64,000 bases of DNA. Origin: Laetmonice hystrix (lineage: Eukaryota). The position numbers and the translations under genes are program-made. The stretch's first letter is position 1. Each line of letters starts with the position of its first letter. The notes under the pieces were generated by a model that did not search any database, was not told the DNA's origin, and saw only the letters and a list, made by a program, of their open reading frames with translations. Location of the stretch: assembly GCA_965235115.1 (NCBI GenBank), contig OZ249450.1, forward strand, positions 15,686,001 through 15,750,000. Direction: 5' to 3'. Positions 15,620 through 33,721 of this stretch are shown in pieces.

Positions 15620-16402
15620 ACTGTCGGGGCCGATCCGGGGGGGGGGGGGGGAATTAGGCGGCTAGATCGGGGGGGGGGGGGTGAATTAGGTGGCTGGCCA
15701 CCCCATCTGAACTGCTTTTTTCCTGCTCACTTCATTTAACAGACCCCCATTTTGTGTTTCAAAATTCACCAAATTGCACCTTAAATTTCACATTTTCCGG
15801 ACAGGGAAGGACTTCGCGCATTTGGCACTCGACCTGTCCAAGGCTCCTATCCACCCTCCCCCCCCACCCCATCCCCCCTTTGAAAAAATCCTACATCCGC
15901 ATTCCGATCCGTTTACAAATGGGTCTGGCCCAATGATGAATGACTCGACAATGAAAAATTATGTGCACGGAAATTTTAAAGTTGTAAAGGTTTATTCATG
16001 ACTTATTGGCTTAGATCCAAGCTATCCCCAGCTGCGCCTCTCTGTATAGTGTATACCCACGAGAAATATTACCTTTTTAAAGCCATTGGCACGAAAATAC
16101 CAGCGTGAAAATATCCCAATCGACAGTAGGCCTAATTAAAAATGTTAATAAAACAGGATCTCATGCTTATAAGCTTCTCTGGAAAGTAAACATCTCTCTC
16201 CTAGCTGACATTTGTTGATGAAAATACCGGCATCCTTGCATCCTGATCCGAACCGTAAACTATAGACTACCTGGGCGGTGGCAGTTGTCACACGACAGTG
16301 TTTCCGACAAAGGCAGAGTAGATTTCTATAAGCTAACTGATATACAACATATCTTTTTCACAGCATTGAAGGCAAGCCACAAAATAAATGTTCTTGCTAT
16401 TT

Positions 16403-19400
16403 TTACCCAGTTGCTGGGGCTCCGGCGCGGCACTGCTGTGCCCGGCAGTTGTGGTCGAGAACACAGCCAGCCGTCGTACGTCGGATCCAGTCCAGGTAGG
16501 TGAGGGTGTTGGTCATAACGGTGAAACGTTTCGGAGTCTCACAGTTAGTGTTATATGACACCACTCCGACCTGGATGAAGTGTCGGTCCCCGGACCTCTC
16601 CGTCATCACTGGACCGCCCACGTCACCGCGACACGCCTCGAACCCCCTACGGTGGACAATACTTCCCGAATTACTTCAACCACGCATGATCAACATTCAC
16701 AGGCTCTTCTTTAATTTGTCTGAGATTAAAGTTTTAAATATTTCCCAGTTTACAGTAATGAATCTTTCAAGAAAAAGCCTCCGAATTGTTGGGGGAAAAG
16801 TATTAAAAAAATATTAATTTGCGTCAATTTATCCTGAGTTGTAACAATTTGTTCTCATGTTAGGCTTCTCGATACCAAGCTTTCAGGAGTGATGCAATGT
16901 TTAGAAAGGTTGAGCCTAAAATGTTGAATATTTCTGTGTGCTGCTCAGCAAAAAAAAAATCCAGTCAACATAACGCGCACCACGCCTATAATGAGACTAG
17001 CAAACCACACCTCGCAGTCTCATCATATTCTTACATCCAAGTCTGAAGAATGTTCAATTTCCAGATTTGGTAGAAAAAGGTAAAAAAAAAAAAAAGTATT
17101 GGCACCTGACAAAAAGTATGAAAAAAGTATAAAAAGTAGTTTTGCACTTAGTATAATACTAAAAAAATAGACATAGCACTGGGCAGGGGGTGCGGACTGA
17201 CCTCTCTCCTATGCAGGACATGTTAGCGCTGTGCTCAGTGAGGTTACGCAGCAGGTTGGTACACCATTTCATGCGGTGGATCTTGGTCAGCTGCTGTTTG
17301 GGGACCTCGAAAGGCGGTAGTTGGGCGGACAGAAGGCTTCCAGCACCCCAGCCGGCTACGTACAGCTTCTTCTCATCATGGACACGCCACGGCGCACGTG
17401 TTATCACCTCCTGACCTGACAACCGACACAGTTTATGGCAGCGATATGACGTTACGGCATAGTGACTTTAGAATGTTCTACGTTTAACCTAAAAAAAACT
17501 TAAATAATTCAAATTATCTTTAAATAGAATATAGAGTAGGTCTCTTTCTACCCTACTTCTCCAAGCGTAACGATCCTGAACCAGGTCAGTTTCGATACGG
17601 ACTTGTCATTATTGTGTACAAACCAGTTATGAGTGTCACACTACTGAACACAGTGAATTCAACAGGAAAACAAGTTTATTTCCCAAAAAGGAAGTAGCCC
17701 TACTGTCATTCCTGGGCACGCATACAGTGCGGTAGTACTTGGCTAATTTGACTGGGTATTTCAGTCGAACCAAGGCGATGTCGTCTGTCAAATCATCCCG
17801 TAACTCGGTCTCATAGCGGTAGATTTCGCTAACAGCGATTGTCAGCACCCGCGGATTTTCTTCCGTCCAGTTATGAACTCCAACACGGACACGGAACTGT
17901 AATGAATTATACTTTAATTACACGGACTCGGAACTGTAATGATACTTTACATTTTAATTACACGGACTCGGAACTGTAATGATACTGTACACTTTAATTA
18001 CATGGAACCTGAATTGTAATGATATTTTACACTTTAATTATGGTATATCCCTCCACGCAAGGCGTTCAAAACTGGTCCCAGTATATATACGTGCCACAGC
18101 AGCGATGTTTTTTTTTTTTTTTTTTTTTTTTTTTGGGGGGGGGGGGGGGTTGTAGGGGAAGCAGTCCACCCACCTTGTCACCCGATAGTGCCTGAATCTG
18201 TCCATTGCCGGCGCGGGTCTTAAAGCACTGAGCGGCCGTGAGCACCCAACTCTGACAGATGAGGGTGCCAGCACACACCATCCTCTCAGGGCCGCCGTCA
18301 AACATCTGATAGATCTGTACCAACCATGGCCATGATCCCTGCAACAACAACACCAAAACACTGCACCAACCATGGCCATGATCCCTGCAACAACAACACC
18401 AAAACACTGCACCAACCATGGCCATGATCCCTGCAACAACAACACCAAAACACTGCACCAACCATGGCCATGATCCCTGCAACAACAACACCAAAACACT
18501 GCACCAACCATGGCCATGATCCCTGCAACAACACCAAAACACTACACCAACCATGGCCATGATCCCTGCAATTAACAACACCGCCAAAACACTGCACCAA
18601 CCATGGCCATGATCCCTGCAACAACAACACCAAAACACTGCACCAACCATGGCCATGGTCCCTGCAACAACACCACCAAAACACTGCACCAACCATGGCC
18701 ATGATCCCTGCAACAACACCGCCAAAACACTGCACCAACCATGGCCATGATCCCTGCAACAACACCGCCAAAACACTGCACCAACCATGGTCATGATCCC
18801 TGCAACAACACCACCAAAACACTGCACCAACCATGGCCATGATCCTTGAAACAACACCACCAAACACTGCACCAACCAAGGCCATGATCCCCGCAACAAC
18901 ATCACCAAAACACTGATTCTCACAACATGATGGCCAATTATATACTTACGTCCTTTGTGTCACCTTTGTTTCCAACCAGCTCAGTGTTGCCTGAAATTCC
19001 ACATTGTTCGTAATCTGCAAAACATTGGCAGAAAAAATATGTAAGCCGCACACACTTTCAAAACACTTCCACAACGCCCCATAAAGTAAGTTTGGCGACC
19101 TGTTGGACGTATGAAAACTGAAATATCTCAAAGACGTTATGGCTTTTCGAAACTAGGTTCTTTTCTGTGGACTTTATTGCAATATAATTTGATAGAAATG
19201 TACATGCTTGAAGAGGTATACATAATAAAAGAGTACCCATTCTTCTGTCGAGAACCAGGTCCCGGAGGTTGTTGAGTTGTCTGTAGTTCTCTAAGAGGTA
19301 GACGTGCTCCTGTATAGGCCTGGAGGCGAACTCTGACAGTTGGCGGCGGTCAACGTCCATCCCAACACCAATCGTGTAGATCTCGACATTTTTCAGCTCT

Positions 19401-22400
19401 TACCGATGGGAGGACAGACAGACATCAACAATATTACCAATGCAAAATTACAGTTGATTTGTATTTGGAAAAAAAAATATGCATCTGGGGAACCAATTAC
19501 TACGGAAGCCACCAACATTTCAGAGAGGCGGTATACGTTTGATGCTTTAGGAGGTGCACATATATTACAATAAATTCCAGCATTTTAGCTGTCATGACAA
19601 GGAAGCGACGATCTCTCGCTGACTGAAACCACTACATGTCCCCCAAGGCTCGGCATTTTTAACTTACTTCTCAAGGATTTTGCCACTGTCTCAGTGGCCC
19701 TTTCACTGCCGACATTTGAGCGTCCGTCTGACATAATAAACATGATCCTCTTTTGGTGGACGTAATTTCCCTTTATTTTGTCTAAGAGGATCATGCGATC
19801 CACAGCTTGAAGAGCCTGACGCAGATTGGTGCCTCCACCTGGTGGCTGGTGGAAAAATAGTAGTGCCTGTAGTACTGTAAACTAAACCCCTAAGAAAGTC
19901 AAGTTATATGGGAAACAATGATATAAAAAGTTAAAGATTCTCTATTCATAGTTTAATATTATAATAACATCACAGAAGAATATAATAATATCCCATCTGA
20001 TTTCTAAATGGGACTTGATGTGCTCTTCCTAGAACCAAGCTACCTGTAGGTCTCCTGGTGTGACAAAAAGATTCTGGGCTTACCTCCAGCACCGACAGCC
20101 TTTGTCTCACTTCCTCAGTCGTACCACAGGAACCCAGTTCTATGGCAATGTTTGTCTCGGAGCCGAAGGCTATCGCTGCCACACGGGTTGTTCCTGGTGA
20201 AAACCATTCTTATAATATCAAAACTCACTCTCTCTGTCTGAAACACCGGACTTTATTGTGATAGTATCTATGTGACGTTTATGGGGTCTAACGGGGATTC
20301 AAGTGGTTCCCAACTCGAAACTCACGTAAGTTCAAATAAAAAGGCATTAAATTGAAGGGTTTAACGTAGAATTATTCTTGCTCAGATGTCGTCAGTAAGT
20401 TCCTTTCACTGACACTAAAGTCTCAGTTTAAAACTTCCATATCTATGAATGAAACCTATCTATGAATGAAAGCTATCTGTGAATGAAACCTATCTGTGAA
20501 TGAAACCTATCTATGAATGAAAGCTATCTGTGAATGAAACCTATCTATGAATGAAACGTACCTGTGAATGAAACCTATCTATGAATGAAACATATCTATG
20601 AATGAAACCTATCTATGAATGCCAGAGAGATCTATGTTTACCTGTCGTATTGGAGACACCAAGTTCAGTGAGAAGGATGTCGGTAAAGTTCACACCACGT
20701 TTGAAGTTATGCGACCCGACACTGGATGAGCCGTCAAACAGGAGGAAGAGGTCGATGCCGTTGGGTTGGATCAGCGAGAACCGAGCTGATACATGGACGG
20801 CACATGTTTACATGGACGGCACACAATACAGGTTCACATGGACGGCACACAATATGGTTCACATGGACGGCACACAATACAGGTTCACATGGACGGCACA
20901 CAATACAGGTTTATATGGACGGCACATGTTCACATGGACGGCACACAATACATGTTCACATGGATGGCAGGCACACAATACATGTTCACATGGATGGCAG
21001 GCACACAATACAGGTTTACTTTGACGGCACACAATACAGGTCCATTTCTATAGGTAAACATTGATTTATGTAGTCTAAGGCCTTATCTAACACATGTCTG
21101 CATTTTGGAGTCATTGAAATGAGAGATACTCAGTGATTGCTTTAAACATAAAAAAATAATACATCGACCCGCTATTGATTAGCTAGAAATATATTTAAGC
21201 CAATCATTTCAAAGTATAACTGCCCTGTCTTTATCTGTTTGCCTAGTTTTATGCCACCACACAAATCACTATCTACGGTTGTATCGAGCTGATGTGCCAC
21301 AACTGAAACCTTTTATCAAGGCCCCGCCAGGTAATGATTATGTCCCGCCAGGAAGACTAACTTACCAACTGACAAATGCTGCTTGCCGGAGGCCGAGTTC
21401 CTCGACATTTCCTCCACCATTTCCCGAAATTTAAGGGCCATGTTTCCGAGAGATTCTGGTTCTGTAGATAAGAGAAGTTACAAGGTGTATGATCTGTGAG
21501 AGCAAAATTGTACATATCGATATAAGAGTGGATCAAAAACTGTTGGAGTTTTCCAGTTTTTGTTCATGTTCACAAAGATGGCTGAGAATAGAAGAGATGG
21601 AGGCATAGATTTATTTGATTGGCTCCTGCAGTTCTTACCTTTACATATAGGCGAGTAGGAGGGACTCCAGTTTAAGGTTCGGGTACACTCTCGGCGACTG
21701 GGGCCAACCAATCGGTAACCTGTCTTACACACATAGTGTATGGCGTTACCACGATAGAAACGATCCCCGCTTATTTCACCGTACTTCACGGGGGTCGGGT
21801 CCGGGCACCGGGGCTCTAAAAATGATTGGAGTATACGAGCATTACGATCACAGAAACTGCAGAGAACGGACAAATTCTCATGTAGTAAATGAATTCAGCT
21901 GACCGACGATTTGATCGGGAATAGTCTTCCTGGACAAAACCGTAGTTTGCGTTTAAATACGCATTTGCTATGCGGAATTGCACCTCATAAATAAGTATAA
22001 TGGCGCATTCTCTGTACTTTCTTTTGGACATTAGAGGTAGAGTAAAACGAAACAATCAGAAGGCTTGATGGCCCAATGATTGGCGCTATATATATATACG
22101 CGGTGGTCTTTACTCCACCTCGCTTGCTGACTCTGAGAATCACTTGCGACGGCCATGCGATCTTTGATTTAATGGTGGAATTTCATGCTGAGATTTTTCC
22201 TGGCTGGCTTTCCGGTTCCATCTTTTAATCTCAAAATAACAGGAAAATAAAAGGGTGATGTCAAAATCGCATGGGCGTCGCAAGGAGAATCGGCTTAGTG
22301 GATAATGCCCTTAATCCAATCAACTTATACGATAAACCGGGTTGACATGAGACGGTATAGGTACGTACTGGGCCTGCAGTAGGGTAGCCGAGGCCACCTT

Positions 22401-24369
22401 CGCTTGGTGCAGGTCAGGAGGGACGGCCCGATCCGATGGTAGTCACCGTGACAGGAGACGACAGCAATGTTCCCACGGAAACCCAGGAGTTTGACATTCC
22501 CGTTGTCTATCTGCGGCTGGAGGCACTCTGGCTCTGAGCATACAGTCAGTAATCGATAAGTAACAATCAGTAATAACAGAAGTCGGACAACTCTACAGTG
22601 GCGGATCCAGGGGGGTGTCTGCGACGTCCGGACCCCCCCCCCCCCCTCAGATTTGCCAAATTTAACTTTTTATAACCAAAATGCCTTATTGTTTTTACAA
22701 CGGACCCCCCCCCCCCCCCCTCGATTTGCCCTTTTTATGCTGGACCCCCTAGGACATCCCCCCCTGAATATAGACCTTAGATCCGCCCCTGCTCTACCAG
22801 GAGAAACAACCCGATTCCAGGCTGGTATCCAACTAAATACACTTTATAGAACCACCGCACTTTTTACCAGTAATACTTTCTTTGGGTTGTCTATGTCTAT
22901 TCAAAGGATTCGCACCGGAAGTACATTTTAAAGGTGGAAATTCGGAAAGAAGTTGTTGGGAGAGTTACCTCGGCAGGAGAAGCCATTGCCGATCAATCCC
23001 TGCTGGCAGATACACGTGTAGCTGCCGTTAGTGTTCACACACGTGGCGTTTCTGTGACAGTGGCGGAGATCATTGTCGTCGTCACCACCATCGCCTGGCT
23101 GACCCCCGCTTCCTTCACCTCCATCGCCTGACTGGCCCCCGCTTCCTTCCTCCATCAGGGCGCATTCGTCAATGTCTGTGTAAAACCAGCAATCCATGTG
23201 TCCGTAGTGCGTAGTGCGTAATGCGTAGTGCGTAATCAAAACAATCAAAACGCACACTTGTTTTCATTGATTTTGATGAAAACGCAATACGCATCACGCC
23301 CACACTACAAATTCAGTCGTAACGGCCGTTTGCAAATAACATAATTTTAGGTCTATGTGAGGACCAAATGTCGAGGCTTATATTGTCACCTTACCTATAT
23401 CCTGGCTTATCATTCTGCTTTTAGGCAAACAAGTGTATCTGTACCTAGTTTTCAAGAGTTAAAATACACTTTTGGGTGAGCGTAGAAGTGGTTGTCACTT
23501 TACCAACACAGATGGGAGGAGTCCCACTGAAGCGCTGCTCCTCTATACTGCAATGGCGAATGGCTGACCCATGACCCAGATGGTAGCCAGGGAGACAGTA
23601 AGCCTTGATGACCCTGTTGTCTTCACTTACTGATTCGTAGTATCCATTCAACACTGAGGCACTGTCGTCAAAACACCCTGCAGTAGTAGAAATTGTTTGA
23701 TAAATTGGAATGTGTGTGTGGGGGGGGGGGGGAACAGACAATACCAGGGCCATCCGCAATGTGCACGGCGGGGCAGTTGTCGACCATGGAATTACAAATT
23801 ATTTAAAGTGATAAGTGCTAGTTCAGAAGGAATATCCTTTTTAAACTGTAACGTGAGAAAGATCATGGTTGGGTGAATGCAAAAAGCCAATAGAATCATA
23901 GATGTCCCCTTATTTCGGATGCCACTGAAATATTCAACCGCTCACTATACAGGGTGTTTCATAAATCTGAGAATCTCAAATTTCTGTTTTTCACTTATAT
24001 TATTAAAACATCTCTCTCTATATGGAGGTTCATTCCCTATAACAGTGGTTCTCAACCATGGGTACGGACGCCGTCCCGTCGCCCCGCCACTAATCCACAT
24101 CGCTTTAACCCATCCCCCCTCTCCGAATCATTCCAAGAATATTCATAAACTCAATCTATTCAAATCTAAAAAGGGCTCAGCGGCCCCCTCAGAGCTCCAA
24201 AAACGGCCCCTAGGGCCGCTATACCACCTTGCTTAGAACCACTGCTCAAAAGGCAATATTGATAGGCCTACTTACGAAAGGTTCGGGTCCTCCATGGGTC
24301 GCAATATACGGCCCCTAATGATACGCTGAGAACCCAGAGCAGATCTAACCGGTACCCTCGACAGTCCAT
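16403..24369 (-). CDS. Complement factor B/C2-like protein, 15 coding exons, ~795 aa: signal peptide, CCP, EGF-Ca, CCP, CCP, linker, vWA, trypsin-like domain (catalytically dead)
   Basis: Kozak gccgccATGg at 24369 (MDCRGYRLDLLWVLSVSLGAVYC). Exons 24369-24276, 23677-23504, 23175-22969, 22533-22369, 21815-21639, 21461-21366, 20785-20642, 20193-20084, 19845-19668, 19398-19237, 19014-18950, 18338-18174, 17896-17704, 17415-17202 and 16646-16403; all GT-AG and phase-compatible, sum 2388 nt. vWA motifs DGSSS, GGTN and SDG; protease motifs SWPWLV, TAAQC, DIAL and CRGDVGGP. Confidence 0.88.
17884..18040 (-). repeat. 37-40-bp tandem (4 copies) containing the splice acceptor and first codons of factor-B-like exon 13
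   Basis: cattacag|ttccg(t/a)gtccgtg at exon starts 17896, 17933 and 17973, plus one degenerate copy. Confidence 0.85.
18319..18915 (-). repeat. ~46-bp minisatellite (13 copies) = splice acceptor plus first 8 codons (GSWPWLVQ) of factor-B-like exon 12
   Basis: Unit ttttggtgttgttgttgcag|ggatcatggccatggttggtgcagtg; fills almost the whole 611-bp intron 18339-18949. Confidence 0.92.
20448..20618. repeat. 17-bp intronic minisatellite (atgaatgaaacctatct), ~10 copies
   Basis: Read directly; lies just beyond the donor of the first vWA exon. Confidence 0.85.
20790..21050. repeat. ~26-bp intronic minisatellite (catggacggcacacaatacaggttca), ~9-10 copies
   Basis: Read directly; abuts the acceptor of the first vWA exon; source of ORFs 20726-21064 and 20793-21053. 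Confidence 0.85.
22596..22791. mobile_element. MITE with CAG...CTG ends and a 5-bp TSD (ctcta)
   Basis: cagtggcggatccagg ... agatccgcccctg; ctcta on both sides; near-identical copy at 58286-58465. Confidence 0.85.
24043..24244. mobile_element. hAT/Charlie-like non-autonomous element
   Basis: cagtggttctcaacc ... ttagaaccactg termini; no matching 8-bp TSD. A related solo end, caggggttctcaacc, occurs at 9691. Confidence 0.5.
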
Positions 24370-31573: not shown

Positions 31574-33721
31574 ATGACGAACAGGGCATACGAGTCTATC
31601 CTTGCCTGCAACAAGTGAGTATTTCTACTCCCCACATACATACTGCTCTGAATGTGGCCCATTTTCATTCTGTGTACATTGGCCTAATACATGTATAATA
31701 ACGAGCCAGATATACCAGCATTGCCCCTATAAAAAACGCAATAATATTATGTGTGGCAGAGAGATGTTCGAGAAGTGTGTGGCGCCAGACGTTTCTTTCA
31801 CCTTACCGACCCACGATGGGCGCACGACGACCGTAAACGCTCACCGTTACATCCTTATTTCTCGAAATCCTGTCTTCCGCGCAATGCTCCTGGGAGCATT
31901 CGACTGTCCAGGCAACGACATACAAGTCTGTGATGTCACGTCGGAGGCTTTTACAGAATTCCTCCGGTAAGACTCCGTTACCACCACCACTTGTAAGAAT
32001 ATACATGGGTATCATTTACTGAAAGTTTCCTTCTCGTCCACTGAGAAGGTGTTTTACTTATTGCTGCAATGTAAATATAGTTTTCTCAGGTAACTCCGGC
32101 TCCCTCCACCACAAAGATTTTATGTTATTACCCGGTTTGGCACACCTGTGATAATAAATGTACCCTATATTCCCACCCAACTAGCCGTGGTCTAGATATG
32201 TCCATGTTAAGTATATAGGGGCCTATATGTTCTCGCGGTGCAGAACGGTCTCGCACAATGCGGTCTAGATGCAAGCAGGGCGTAAAACATCAATCACCAT
32301 AAATTATTTAGACGGAGACACTTTCGCTAAAGCGGGGAGGGTGGGTGGGTATTTCGGGTTCCTTGTAACAGCCAGGGTCATATCTCGACTGACAAACCTT
32401 TCACACATGCAGGCGATGGTCCTAGGTGCCATGAACCAACACCTTAGACCAATCGGCCACCCGAGGCCCCCGCTAAAGCGGGGAACACACCTGATGCGAT
32501 GCGACGCGATTATGAAAAGCTCCTTATGGTTTTCAACGAGTGTGAAGACACCTGAAGCTCCAGCGACATGCAGCTTCAGGTGTTTTCATAATCACACCGC
32601 ATCGCGTCGCATCGCGTCAGGTGTGTTCCCAGCTTCAGGACCCCCATCTCCATGTCTTATCTATTATTTCAACATTACATTTCCACGCTAGGTTTCTCTA
32701 CTACGAGGAAGCATTCCTAAATGAAGACATTATCTGTGAGGTCATTTACGTCGCCAAAAAGTATATGGCAGCACAACTCCTGGACCGATGCGTGGCCTTC
32801 CTTCAGGACAACATAACCGAGCAAAATGCGTGTTTGGTCTTAGAGATGGCTCTTCTTTTTGACCTCGAAGACCTTGAGACCCGGTGTATGCAGATCATAA
32901 GGGCCAAGACAACCGCCATAATACAGGACGAAATGATCGTGCGCATGAACCGCCGGGTTCTAGAACGAATCCTGCAAAGCGACATATTGAACGCCTCGGA
33001 GGTGGAACTCTACAATGCATGCGTAAAATGGGCTACGTTCAAATGTGAACACGAGAAACTTCCGTGCACTTCCGAGAACCTGCGGAACGCCCTTGGCAAC
33101 GCCATGAACCTCATTCGCATACCCACCATACTGCAGGAAAACCCTGGCAACGAATTCTATTTGGAACTACTGAGCCAGTACGAAAGAGACGCTTTACAGG
33201 CTTTCCAGGAGGACCCATCAAATAAGACTATTTTACCTTTTCTGACATCACGGCGGAAGCAAAGGTCGTTGGAACGCATGCGCTGTGGTCTTATCAGTGG
33301 CGTCTCAACGACCTCAGTTCGTGCAGGGACGGTCTCTCAGCATATCTTCACAATAAGTGAGGATATCATCCTTCACTCTATTGACATTCTCGATCGCTGG
33401 AAGTCGCCTACAATGAGCCTCGCCTGCATCATTAATCAAAATGGGAAGAAATGTATCAGTTACAGAATGCGGGTACCGCCAGTCAGGAAGGGTACTGGTC
33501 TTGGGCCTGTTGTTCCAATGTTTCTCCCTGAAACAGGCGTCAAGTTGAAAGCTGGCCAGTTTGAAATCGGCATAACGCATGGCTTTCTTGGAGGGGGCAT
33601 GTATGTTTCGGTTCCTTGTGGCAAGGCTAGATCTGGCACTATTGAGAATTACGGTTTAGACATATCGGTATATGCACCGAATTGTCACCACATTGCTTCC
33701 ATCGAGTTTTCCCTTCTATAA
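31574..33721 (+). CDS. BTB/POZ-BACK domain protein with a PHR-like C-terminus (BTBD1/2/3/6-like), at least 3 exons, at least 425 aa
   Basis: Exons 31574-31614, 31760-31966 and 32692-33721 (phases 2, 2). DVSF...AHRYILISRNPVFRAML...DVTSEAFTEFLRFLY, AKKY...CVAFL...NACLVL, ASEVELYNACVKWA, LRNALGNAMNLIRIPT. The true start may lie further upstream. Confidence 0.85.
32476..32635. mobile_element. Hairpin MITE in the BTB-gene intron
   Basis: aagcggggaacacacctgatgcgatgcgacgcgat ... atcgcgtcgcatcgcgtcaggtgtgttcccagctt; TSD unclear. Confidence 0.55.

Follow-up and report, generated by a model that had tools for sequence, protein, structure and literature searches.

The window analysed here is a stretch of 64,000 nucleotides from Laetmonice hystrix (contig OZ249450.1, positions 15,686,001 to 15,750,000), and its main subject is a minus-strand gene, running from 24369 to 16403, that is related to complement factor B and C2 (Bf/C2). 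The coding sequence of 2,388 nt is spread over 15 exons and encodes an open frame of 795 amino acids; all 14 introns have GT..AG ends. Pfam assignments, made exon by exon, gave Sushi, EGF_3/EGF_CA, Sushi, Sushi, VWA (three exons) and Trypsin (two exons), so the product is a string of complement control protein (CCP) modules and other domains in the order CCP–EGF–CCP–CCP–linker–von Willebrand factor A (vWA)–serine-protease-like domain, preceded by a probable signal peptide. The protein is shown to be of the secretory type. A preliminary description of the gene, made from the letters of the window alone, does not mention the EGF module between CCP1 and CCP2. The exons, together with the one intron that matters for what follows, are:

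24276..24369, minus strand: exon 1, ATG and hydrophobic N-terminus, probable signal peptide
23504..23677, minus strand: exon 2, CCP1 (Pfam Sushi, E 1.7e-4)
22969..23175, minus strand: exon 3, EGF module of the calcium-binding type, DIDEC... (Pfam EGF_3 1.2e-11, EGF_CA 4e-7)
22369..22533, minus strand: exon 4, CCP2 (Pfam Sushi over the full profile length, weak, E 0.013)
21639..21815, minus strand: exon 5, CCP3 (Pfam Sushi 1.3e-12)
21366..21461, minus strand: exon 6, linker (Ba-like C-terminal helix region) ending in ...HLSV, which aligns with other Bf linkers
20642..20785, minus strand: exon 7, Arg306-Phe307 junction, then the first part of the vWA domain, which holds DGSSS (Pfam VWA profile positions 1-35)
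20084..20193, minus strand: exon 8, middle of the vWA domain
19668..19845, minus strand: exon 9, vWA domain with Thr395 (GGTN) and Asp429 (SDG) (Pfam VWA positions 76-125)
19237..19398, minus strand: exon 10, C-terminal part of the vWA domain (Pfam VWA positions 130-172, E 1.1e-5)
18950..19014, minus strand: exon 11, segment connecting vWA to protease, with a conserved Cys
18339..18949, minus strand: intron 11, almost wholly a minisatellite of 13 units of 46 bp (Tandem Repeats Finder (TRF) rows 18315-18915)
18174..18338, minus strand: exon 12 with its start corrected, beginning of the protease-like domain, GSWPWLVQ...TAAQC, Gln561
17704..17896, minus strand: exon 13, protease-like domain with DDIAL (Pfam Trypsin 3.7e-5)
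17202..17415, minus strand: exon 14, middle of the protease-like domain
16403..16646, minus strand: exon 15, GDVGG with Val724, Cys-rich tail, stop TAA (Pfam Trypsin 3.1e-8)

The protein does not carry the catalytic triad His57-Asp102-Ser195. As the preliminary description had stated, the equivalent of His57 is a glutamine (Gln561 in TAAQC, CAG at 18230-18228) and that of Ser195 a valine (Val724 in GDVGG, GTG at 16621-16619), while the equivalent of Asp102 is kept (Asp618 in DDIAL, GAC at 17782-17780). With Gln at position 57 and Val at 195, the canonical protease mechanism is impossible. The substrate cleft is altered as well, residue 189 being Glu and residues 214-216 reading SYN, not SWG. 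All eight canonical cysteines of the protease domain are present, and two more, at positions 552 and 776, are clade-specific.

The features that define the Bf/C2 family are intact. Sushi modules are found in exons 2, 4 (weak) and 5, and a C-terminal domain of the chymotrypsin fold (Pfam Trypsin in exons 13 and 15) follows directly after the vWA domain without an activation peptide of the Ile16 type. The MIDAS (metal-ion-dependent adhesion site) of the vWA domain had been described as complete, and the alignment, together with the Pfam VWA matches in exons 7, 9 and 10, places Asp322, Ser324 and Ser326 (DGSSS), Thr395 (GGTN) and Asp429 (SDG) in the conserved columns. The linker ends in SVAR306, followed by F307. 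That this Arg aligns with the scissile Arg of factor B, as had been proposed, was borne out: when Bf proteins from cnidarians, a hemichordate and lamprey are aligned, Arg306 matches their Arg at the Ba/Bb junction; it lies about 15-16 residues before the MIDAS Asp, a Bf-like spacing between linker and MIDAS.

One could still suppose that some non-canonical catalysis remains, with another residue as nucleophile or base. Asp102 and the GDxGG backbone are indeed kept, and the authors who reported factor B-like proteins devoid of the triad call the loss of activity untested in those proteins (PMC4714745). However, Val, Leu or Ile at position 195 together with Gln or Lys at position 57, as seen in the three members of the clade described below, which differ at these positions, offers no pair of nucleophile and base, and the S1 and 214-216 residues are degenerate too. 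We therefore regard residual catalysis as very improbable.

To follow up the call in the preliminary description for a check of both codons in reads and RNA-type data, contigs from four public runs (X1-X4), all from one sample, which is probably the assembled individual, were compared with positions 16350-18420 of the window. Runs X1-X3, which are DNA-type, gave unspliced contigs covering both triad codons with their letters unchanged. The RNA-type run X4 gave a spliced contig of 2,820 nt at a mean k-mer depth of about 199, from which introns 12, 13 and 14 had been removed exactly at the predicted GT..AG sites, joining 17896 to 18174, 17413-17415 to 17702-17704, and 16645-16646 to 17201-17202. 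The 1,642 nt of this contig upstream of exon 12 agree with the combined length of exons 1-11 (1,572 nt) and a 5' untranslated region of about 70 nt. No alternative letter at the Gln561 or Val724 codon was seen in the contigs of the four runs. We conclude that the gene is transcribed and spliced.

Five coding variants were found among the contigs over exons 12-15 (16475, 16553, 16556, 16559 and 18291), and all five are third-position and synonymous. At 16753-16756, in intron 14, 2 letters are replaced by 129 others in the contigs of each of the three DNA-type runs, which is likely an intronic insertion/deletion polymorphism or a haplotype difference.

The same contig corrected the gene model at one point. 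Fifteen exons, open and in phase, had been described, and this stands, except that exon 12 starts at 18338 and not at 18314, which adds GSWPWLVQ in frame; 'WPW' is the usual start of a trypsin-fold domain. The contig has a loose end at 18338 that is the reverse complement of the 3' end of exon 11. The unit of the intron 11 minisatellite is a copy of the 3' splice site and the first 24 nt of exon 12, and the last copy supplies the acceptor used by the RNA-type contig. In the paralogue introduced below, the equivalent intron likewise contains four or more additional copies of that gene's exon-12 start (GSWPWLVQIYQRF; about G000:C20:22180669-22181190), so the array is old or recurrent. Other intronic minisatellites in the window gene lie at 17883-18040 (40-bp x 4), 20440-20621 (17-bp x 11) and 20802-21041 (26-bp x 9). 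Repetition has also reached the coding sequence. The EGF module of exon 3 bears an acidic Gly/Ser-rich insert, and TRF reports a 33-bp in-frame tandem duplication there (23082-23156, 2.3 copies) that encodes two copies of EGSGGQ(S/P)GDGG; the corresponding acidic insert of the paralogue is shorter.

Using exons 15, 12 and 10 as queries against the genome, we found one paralogue, 6.5 Mb away on the same contig (G000:C20:22.176-22.19 Mb). All domains are present, the MIDAS is intact, and the motifs read TAAQC, DDIAL and GDLGG, so that His57 is replaced by Gln and Ser195 by Leu. Over 667 aligned codons, the amino acid identity of the two copies is 63%. As Gln is common to both, the loss of His57 most simply predates the duplication. 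Between the copies dN is 0.26 and pS 0.66 (dS about 1.6, saturated), and the Nei–Gojobori (NG86) omega is about 0.16 overall, 0.13 for the vWA domain and 0.19 for the protease domain; these values are only approximate, because dS is saturated and only codons aligned in high-scoring segment pairs (HSPs) were used. At 0.19 against 0.16 overall, the dead domain is under the same degree of constraint as the other parts of the protein, and both copies have been under purifying selection in every domain since the duplication.

These data bear directly on the possibility that the locus is an artefact or a decaying pseudogene, in that the two codons were misassembled or the gene is a relic that is no longer expressed. 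We found no point in favour of it. The codons are identical in the contigs of four runs, DNA-type as well as the correctly spliced RNA-type one with its k-mer depth of about 199, so that neither an assembly error nor a silent gene accounts for them; the frame is open over 15 exons, Gln is shared with the paralogue and omega is 0.16. This reading is refuted by the codon, paralogue and omega evidence, and we give it next to no credence. Fold-defining residues are kept, catalytic residues are replaced, the gene is expressed and dN/dS lies well below 1. The view that the gene encodes a maintained pseudoenzyme is thus upheld by its splicing and expression, by the Gln in an old paralogue, by a dN/dS of about 0.16-0.19 and by variants that are synonymous in five cases out of five. 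Collectively, our results very strongly suggest that the window gene is a real, expressed and selected pseudoprotease of the Bf/C2 family.

To place the gene among its relatives, exon 15 was compared with 1.8 billion cluster representatives. No relative above 48% identity was found, and proteins with multiple protease domains dominate the match list. The sole true architectural relative in this search, at rank 150, is P0150, the 771-aa product of a 2,648-nt Logan contig from run ERR14707600. Its Pfam layout is that of the window protein (Sushi/EGF/Sushi/VWA/Trypsin), it shares the 'ARFS' junction and DGSSS, and its triad positions are Lys, Asp and Ile. The EGF module is the best conserved part between the two proteins (58%, against 27-38% for the other domains). 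The junction Arg and the MIDAS residues are kept in all three members of the clade (window protein, paralogue and P0150).

Sequence comparison of P0150 with the PDB gave human factor B as its best multi-domain match. An AlphaFold model of P0150, built from alignment A2 (mean pLDDT 66.8, with the vWA and protease blocks mostly at 70-89), was searched with Foldseek, and places 1-28 were all taken by factor B/C2 chains at E about 1e-39, with PDB 2XWJ among the top ones.

A phylogeny had been suggested as a check. Sequences were gathered by a protein search with the octocoral protein P0151 (cnidarian, hemichordate and vertebrate set), and a maximum likelihood tree was built from cnidarian, hemichordate, lamprey and fish Bf, the two copies from the genome of the window and P0150, with factor C as the outgroup and no other protostome Bf. 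In the tree rooted on factor C, both copies and P0150 form a 100/100 clade nested within Bf/C2; the Bf/C2 ingroup including this clade is itself supported at 100/100, and the clade is sister to deuterostome Bf (92/90). Word-indexed protein searches with P0150 and A2 returned no protostome Bf protein (mostly vitrins and EGF proteins). By descent, as judged from this tree, the window gene appears to be the lineage's factor B.

The preliminary description went further, proposing that the protein could be a decoy or regulatory convertase subunit which docks on C3b through its CCPs and MIDAS and, unable to cut C3, dampens or scaffolds an alternative pathway that an active factor B runs; it accordingly called for a search for active Bf paralogues and C3 in the genome. 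Genome searches with exons 10, 12 and 15, with P0150 and with the 14-sequence Bf profile A2 gave no third Bf-type locus. Exon-by-exon searches with scoring of the best candidates found no catalytic factor B gene, only the two Bf-type loci, both dead. The sensitivity of these searches was limited, the A2 profile search being swamped by single-exon vWA and CCP arrays. A genome query with Ptychodera Bf was swamped in the same way and did not recover even the two known copies.

Two other loci were noted in the course of these searches. An intronless open frame of 254 aa at G000:C1:50748139-50748795 (minus strand; E 1e-39, 34% identity to Ptychodera Bf), with no vWA match nearby, resembles the protease portion of the Bf profile more than any other locus of the genome does. 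A single open frame of 2,437 aa at G000:C2:42062253-42069395 (plus strand) encodes many tandem CCP (Sushi) modules. Within the window itself, a neighbouring gene at 31602-33721 (plus strand) has long open frames, one of 366 aa; by eye it resembles a BTB/BACK-type protein, and it is apparently unrelated.

The genome was also searched for a C3-type partner among the thioester proteins (TEPs). About eight TEP loci were recognized by matches to TED_complement and A2M_recep, the strongest of which, on C1 and C20, are A2M/CD109-like. The contig of the window gene bears, at a distance of 1.5 Mb from it, a TEP gene (G000:C20:17177530-17189538, plus strand) whose GCGEQ motif is intact and which PDB comparison showed to be A2M-like. 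In two paralogous TEP genes, G000:C10:6390304-6425317 and G000:C8:8134295-8169356 (minus strand), the thioester exons match C4/C3 better than A2M; a further exon of the C10 gene was uninformative. Comparison of these two genes revealed no conserved exon after the receptor-binding domain, and no ANATO-like exon lies between their MG6 and MG7 exons, the candidate frames there being unmatched. C345C-like open frames picked by eye downstream of the C10 gene had no Pfam or PDB support and were rejected, as were ANATO-like regex matches, which proved to be intron minisatellites; the introns of both genes are full of Cys/Pro-rich minisatellites.

A profile search of the genome gave no ANATO match, in a search that had no working positive control. 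NTR/C345C matches occurred at three loci, all of them other than the TEP loci, and no TEP exons were seen in the 10 kb fetched beside them (the upstream side for two of the three). Taken together, no TEP with the C3-specific ANATO or C345C domains was found in the genome.

The decoy idea gains from the intact and conserved MIDAS, CCPs and junction Arg, from the factor B/C2 fold family and from the two TEP loci with C3/C4-like thioester exons. A decoy needs a competitor, however, and the only Bf-type loci that we found are both dead. In human C3bB, the MIDAS binds the C-terminus of C345C; none of the TEP loci has a detectable ANATO or C345C/NTR, and the three NTR loci show no TEP exons in the 10 kb beside them. 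C3-like genes have moreover been reported as lost from representative annelids (PMC8960428). The entire clade is dead, the distant P0150 included, which suggests that the window gene represents the Bf of this lineage and is not a side branch with a regulatory role beside an active Bf. With a context that does not favour occupation of C3b or dampening of an alternative pathway, the decoy idea is weakly supported and, in our estimation, quite improbable. The preliminary interpretation as a whole is partly supported.

A different possibility is that the protein was re-used outside immunity, with the CCP, calcium-binding EGF and vWA domains serving as extracellular adhesion or matrix modules, a structural or ligand-binding task for the dead protease domain, and no link to TEPs. 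Trypsin-fold domains do serve as structural or ligand-binding domains in other inactive proteins. The conservation of the EGF module above all other domains relative to P0150, the richness of the genome in vWA matrix genes and the failure to detect C3 are consistent with such a role. The retention of an activation-type Arg and of the exact Bf spacing between linker and MIDAS is, on the other hand, easier to understand if zymogen-like activation still matters, and the idea is without positive support. We consider it unlikely.

We instead favour the view that the window protein is a non-catalytic binding or scaffold module and not a decoy of an active convertase. The protein would most likely circulate as a closed pro-form, which a trypsin-like protease could cut after the conserved Arg306. 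The Mg2+-binding MIDAS site, the CCP and EGF modules and the disulfide-stabilised protease-like domain may then dock onto a partner, which could be a thioester protein encoded in this genome or the surface of a microbe or a cell; the protease-like domain would act as a binding platform. Such a role would resemble that of non-catalytic serine-protease homologues, such as mosquito SPCLIP1, which organise a TEP1-based complement-like reaction. By analogy with these, a cleavage-activated, MIDAS-dependent scaffold is a tentative proposal that we hold to be plausible but rather less than probable in its particulars. As a whole, the explanation of the locus as an expressed, selected, dead member of Bf/C2 that works as a non-catalytic module is on balance probably correct.

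Several points weigh against this explanation. The scaffold mechanism draws on conserved motifs and analogy, and the structural model is that of P0150, not of the window protein, at its mean pLDDT of 66.8. The RNA-type run shares its sample with the DNA runs. The dS values between the paralogues are saturated (1.3-2.2), and only HSP-aligned codons entered the comparison. Since the Ptychodera query missed even the known copies, a divergent active Bf could have been missed, and the absence of ANATO comes from the uncontrolled profile search mentioned above. Judging from the thioester exons of the C10 and C8 genes, a C3-like partner without a recognisable C345C may exist.

In the oldest complement pathway, factor B is regarded as the protease. 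To our knowledge, versions without the triad have been noted in a few invertebrates and never explained or tested. The window locus adds a well-supported case: there is a transcript, the loss is shared by an old paralogue, and the dead domain is clearly under purifying selection. Neither an active factor B nor a classical C3 was found in the genome, and if these absences hold, the protein offers a clean system for studying roles of factor B other than the cutting of C3. As things stand, this is an incremental addition and not a surprise. A broader statement, that a lineage without classical C3 or catalytic factor B has long kept a duplicated, protease-dead factor B with intact MIDAS and activation site under purifying selection, is one that we consider unlikely. 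If it were true, factor B would have a convertase-independent, non-proteolytic function, for example the Mg2+-dependent bridging of other thioester proteins or microbes. Such a function might be ancestral and could explain the recurrence of triad-less factor B-like proteins in spiders, a clam, octocorals and worms.

With human factor B and C2 (PDB 2OK5, 2XWJ and 2I6Q, among others), the window protein shares the succession of CCPs, linker bearing the Arg of the cleavage site, MIDAS-bearing vWA domain and C-terminal trypsin-fold domain. It differs in the EGF module between CCP1 and CCP2, in Gln57 and Val195, in the degenerate S1 and 214-216 residues and in its Cys-rich tail, and no C3b or C4b partner was identified in its genome. 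The EGF module has counterparts elsewhere. The FB/C2 of the amphioxus Branchiostoma belcheri is listed with the same domain set (3 CCPs + EGF_CA, 752 aa; table 1 of PMC4714745), and the Oculina 'complement C2-like' protein P0213 has an EGF in its precomputed Pfam list, whereas it keeps TVAHC and GDSGS, and with them His57 and Ser195.

The preliminary description had cautioned that inactive invertebrate Bf-like proteins might already be described, and this was justified. Lox-FB of Loxosceles laeta, FB-3 of Hasarius adansoni and an FB-like protein of Ruditapes decussatus lack the triad, keep the MIDAS residues and share two extra cysteines; their authors state that no experiment shows their role (PMC4714745). 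The kind of protein is therefore already known. The window protein resembles them in its CCP-vWA-SP (serine protease) order, its kept MIDAS, its non-conserved triad and its two extra cysteines, which in the window clade are clade-specific. By description, these proteins have two CCPs and no EGF, whereas ours has three CCPs and an EGF; in Lox-FB none of the triad residues remains (they are Ser, Asn and Pro), whereas the window protein keeps Asp102 and has Gln and Val at the other two positions. New here are the phylum, the pairing of a dead triad with a CCP–EGF architecture, the evidence for transcription and selection, and the apparent absence of an active Bf and a classical C3.

Dead catalytic sites were also seen in public octocoral entries that bear the names 'complement factor B-like' or 'C3/C5 convertase' (Xenia P0151; Paramuricea P0210; P0209, P0211 and P0212). 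In the alignment these lack His57 (Asn, Ser or Lys instead), have Thr at Ser195 (GDTGG) and YN or IN rather than WG at 215-216, and keep the MIDAS and the junction Arg. Unlike the window clade they have no EGF, and in the tree their place is among active hexacoral Bf proteins; the approximately unbiased (AU) test disfavoured one common origin for the two sets of dead proteins (p = 0.032). We found no paper mentioning the loss of the triad in octocorals.

The closest functional precedent for the proposed role is SPCLIP1 of Anopheles gambiae, a non-catalytic CLIP-domain serine-protease homologue that regulates the recruitment of TEP1, a C3-like thioester protein lacking ANATO and C345C (PMC3764210). 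SPCLIP1 differs from the window protein in having a clip domain and neither CCP nor vWA modules, but both are dead trypsin-fold proteins, and it is in this respect, by analogy only, that SPCLIP1 serves as a model for what a protease-dead factor B might do.

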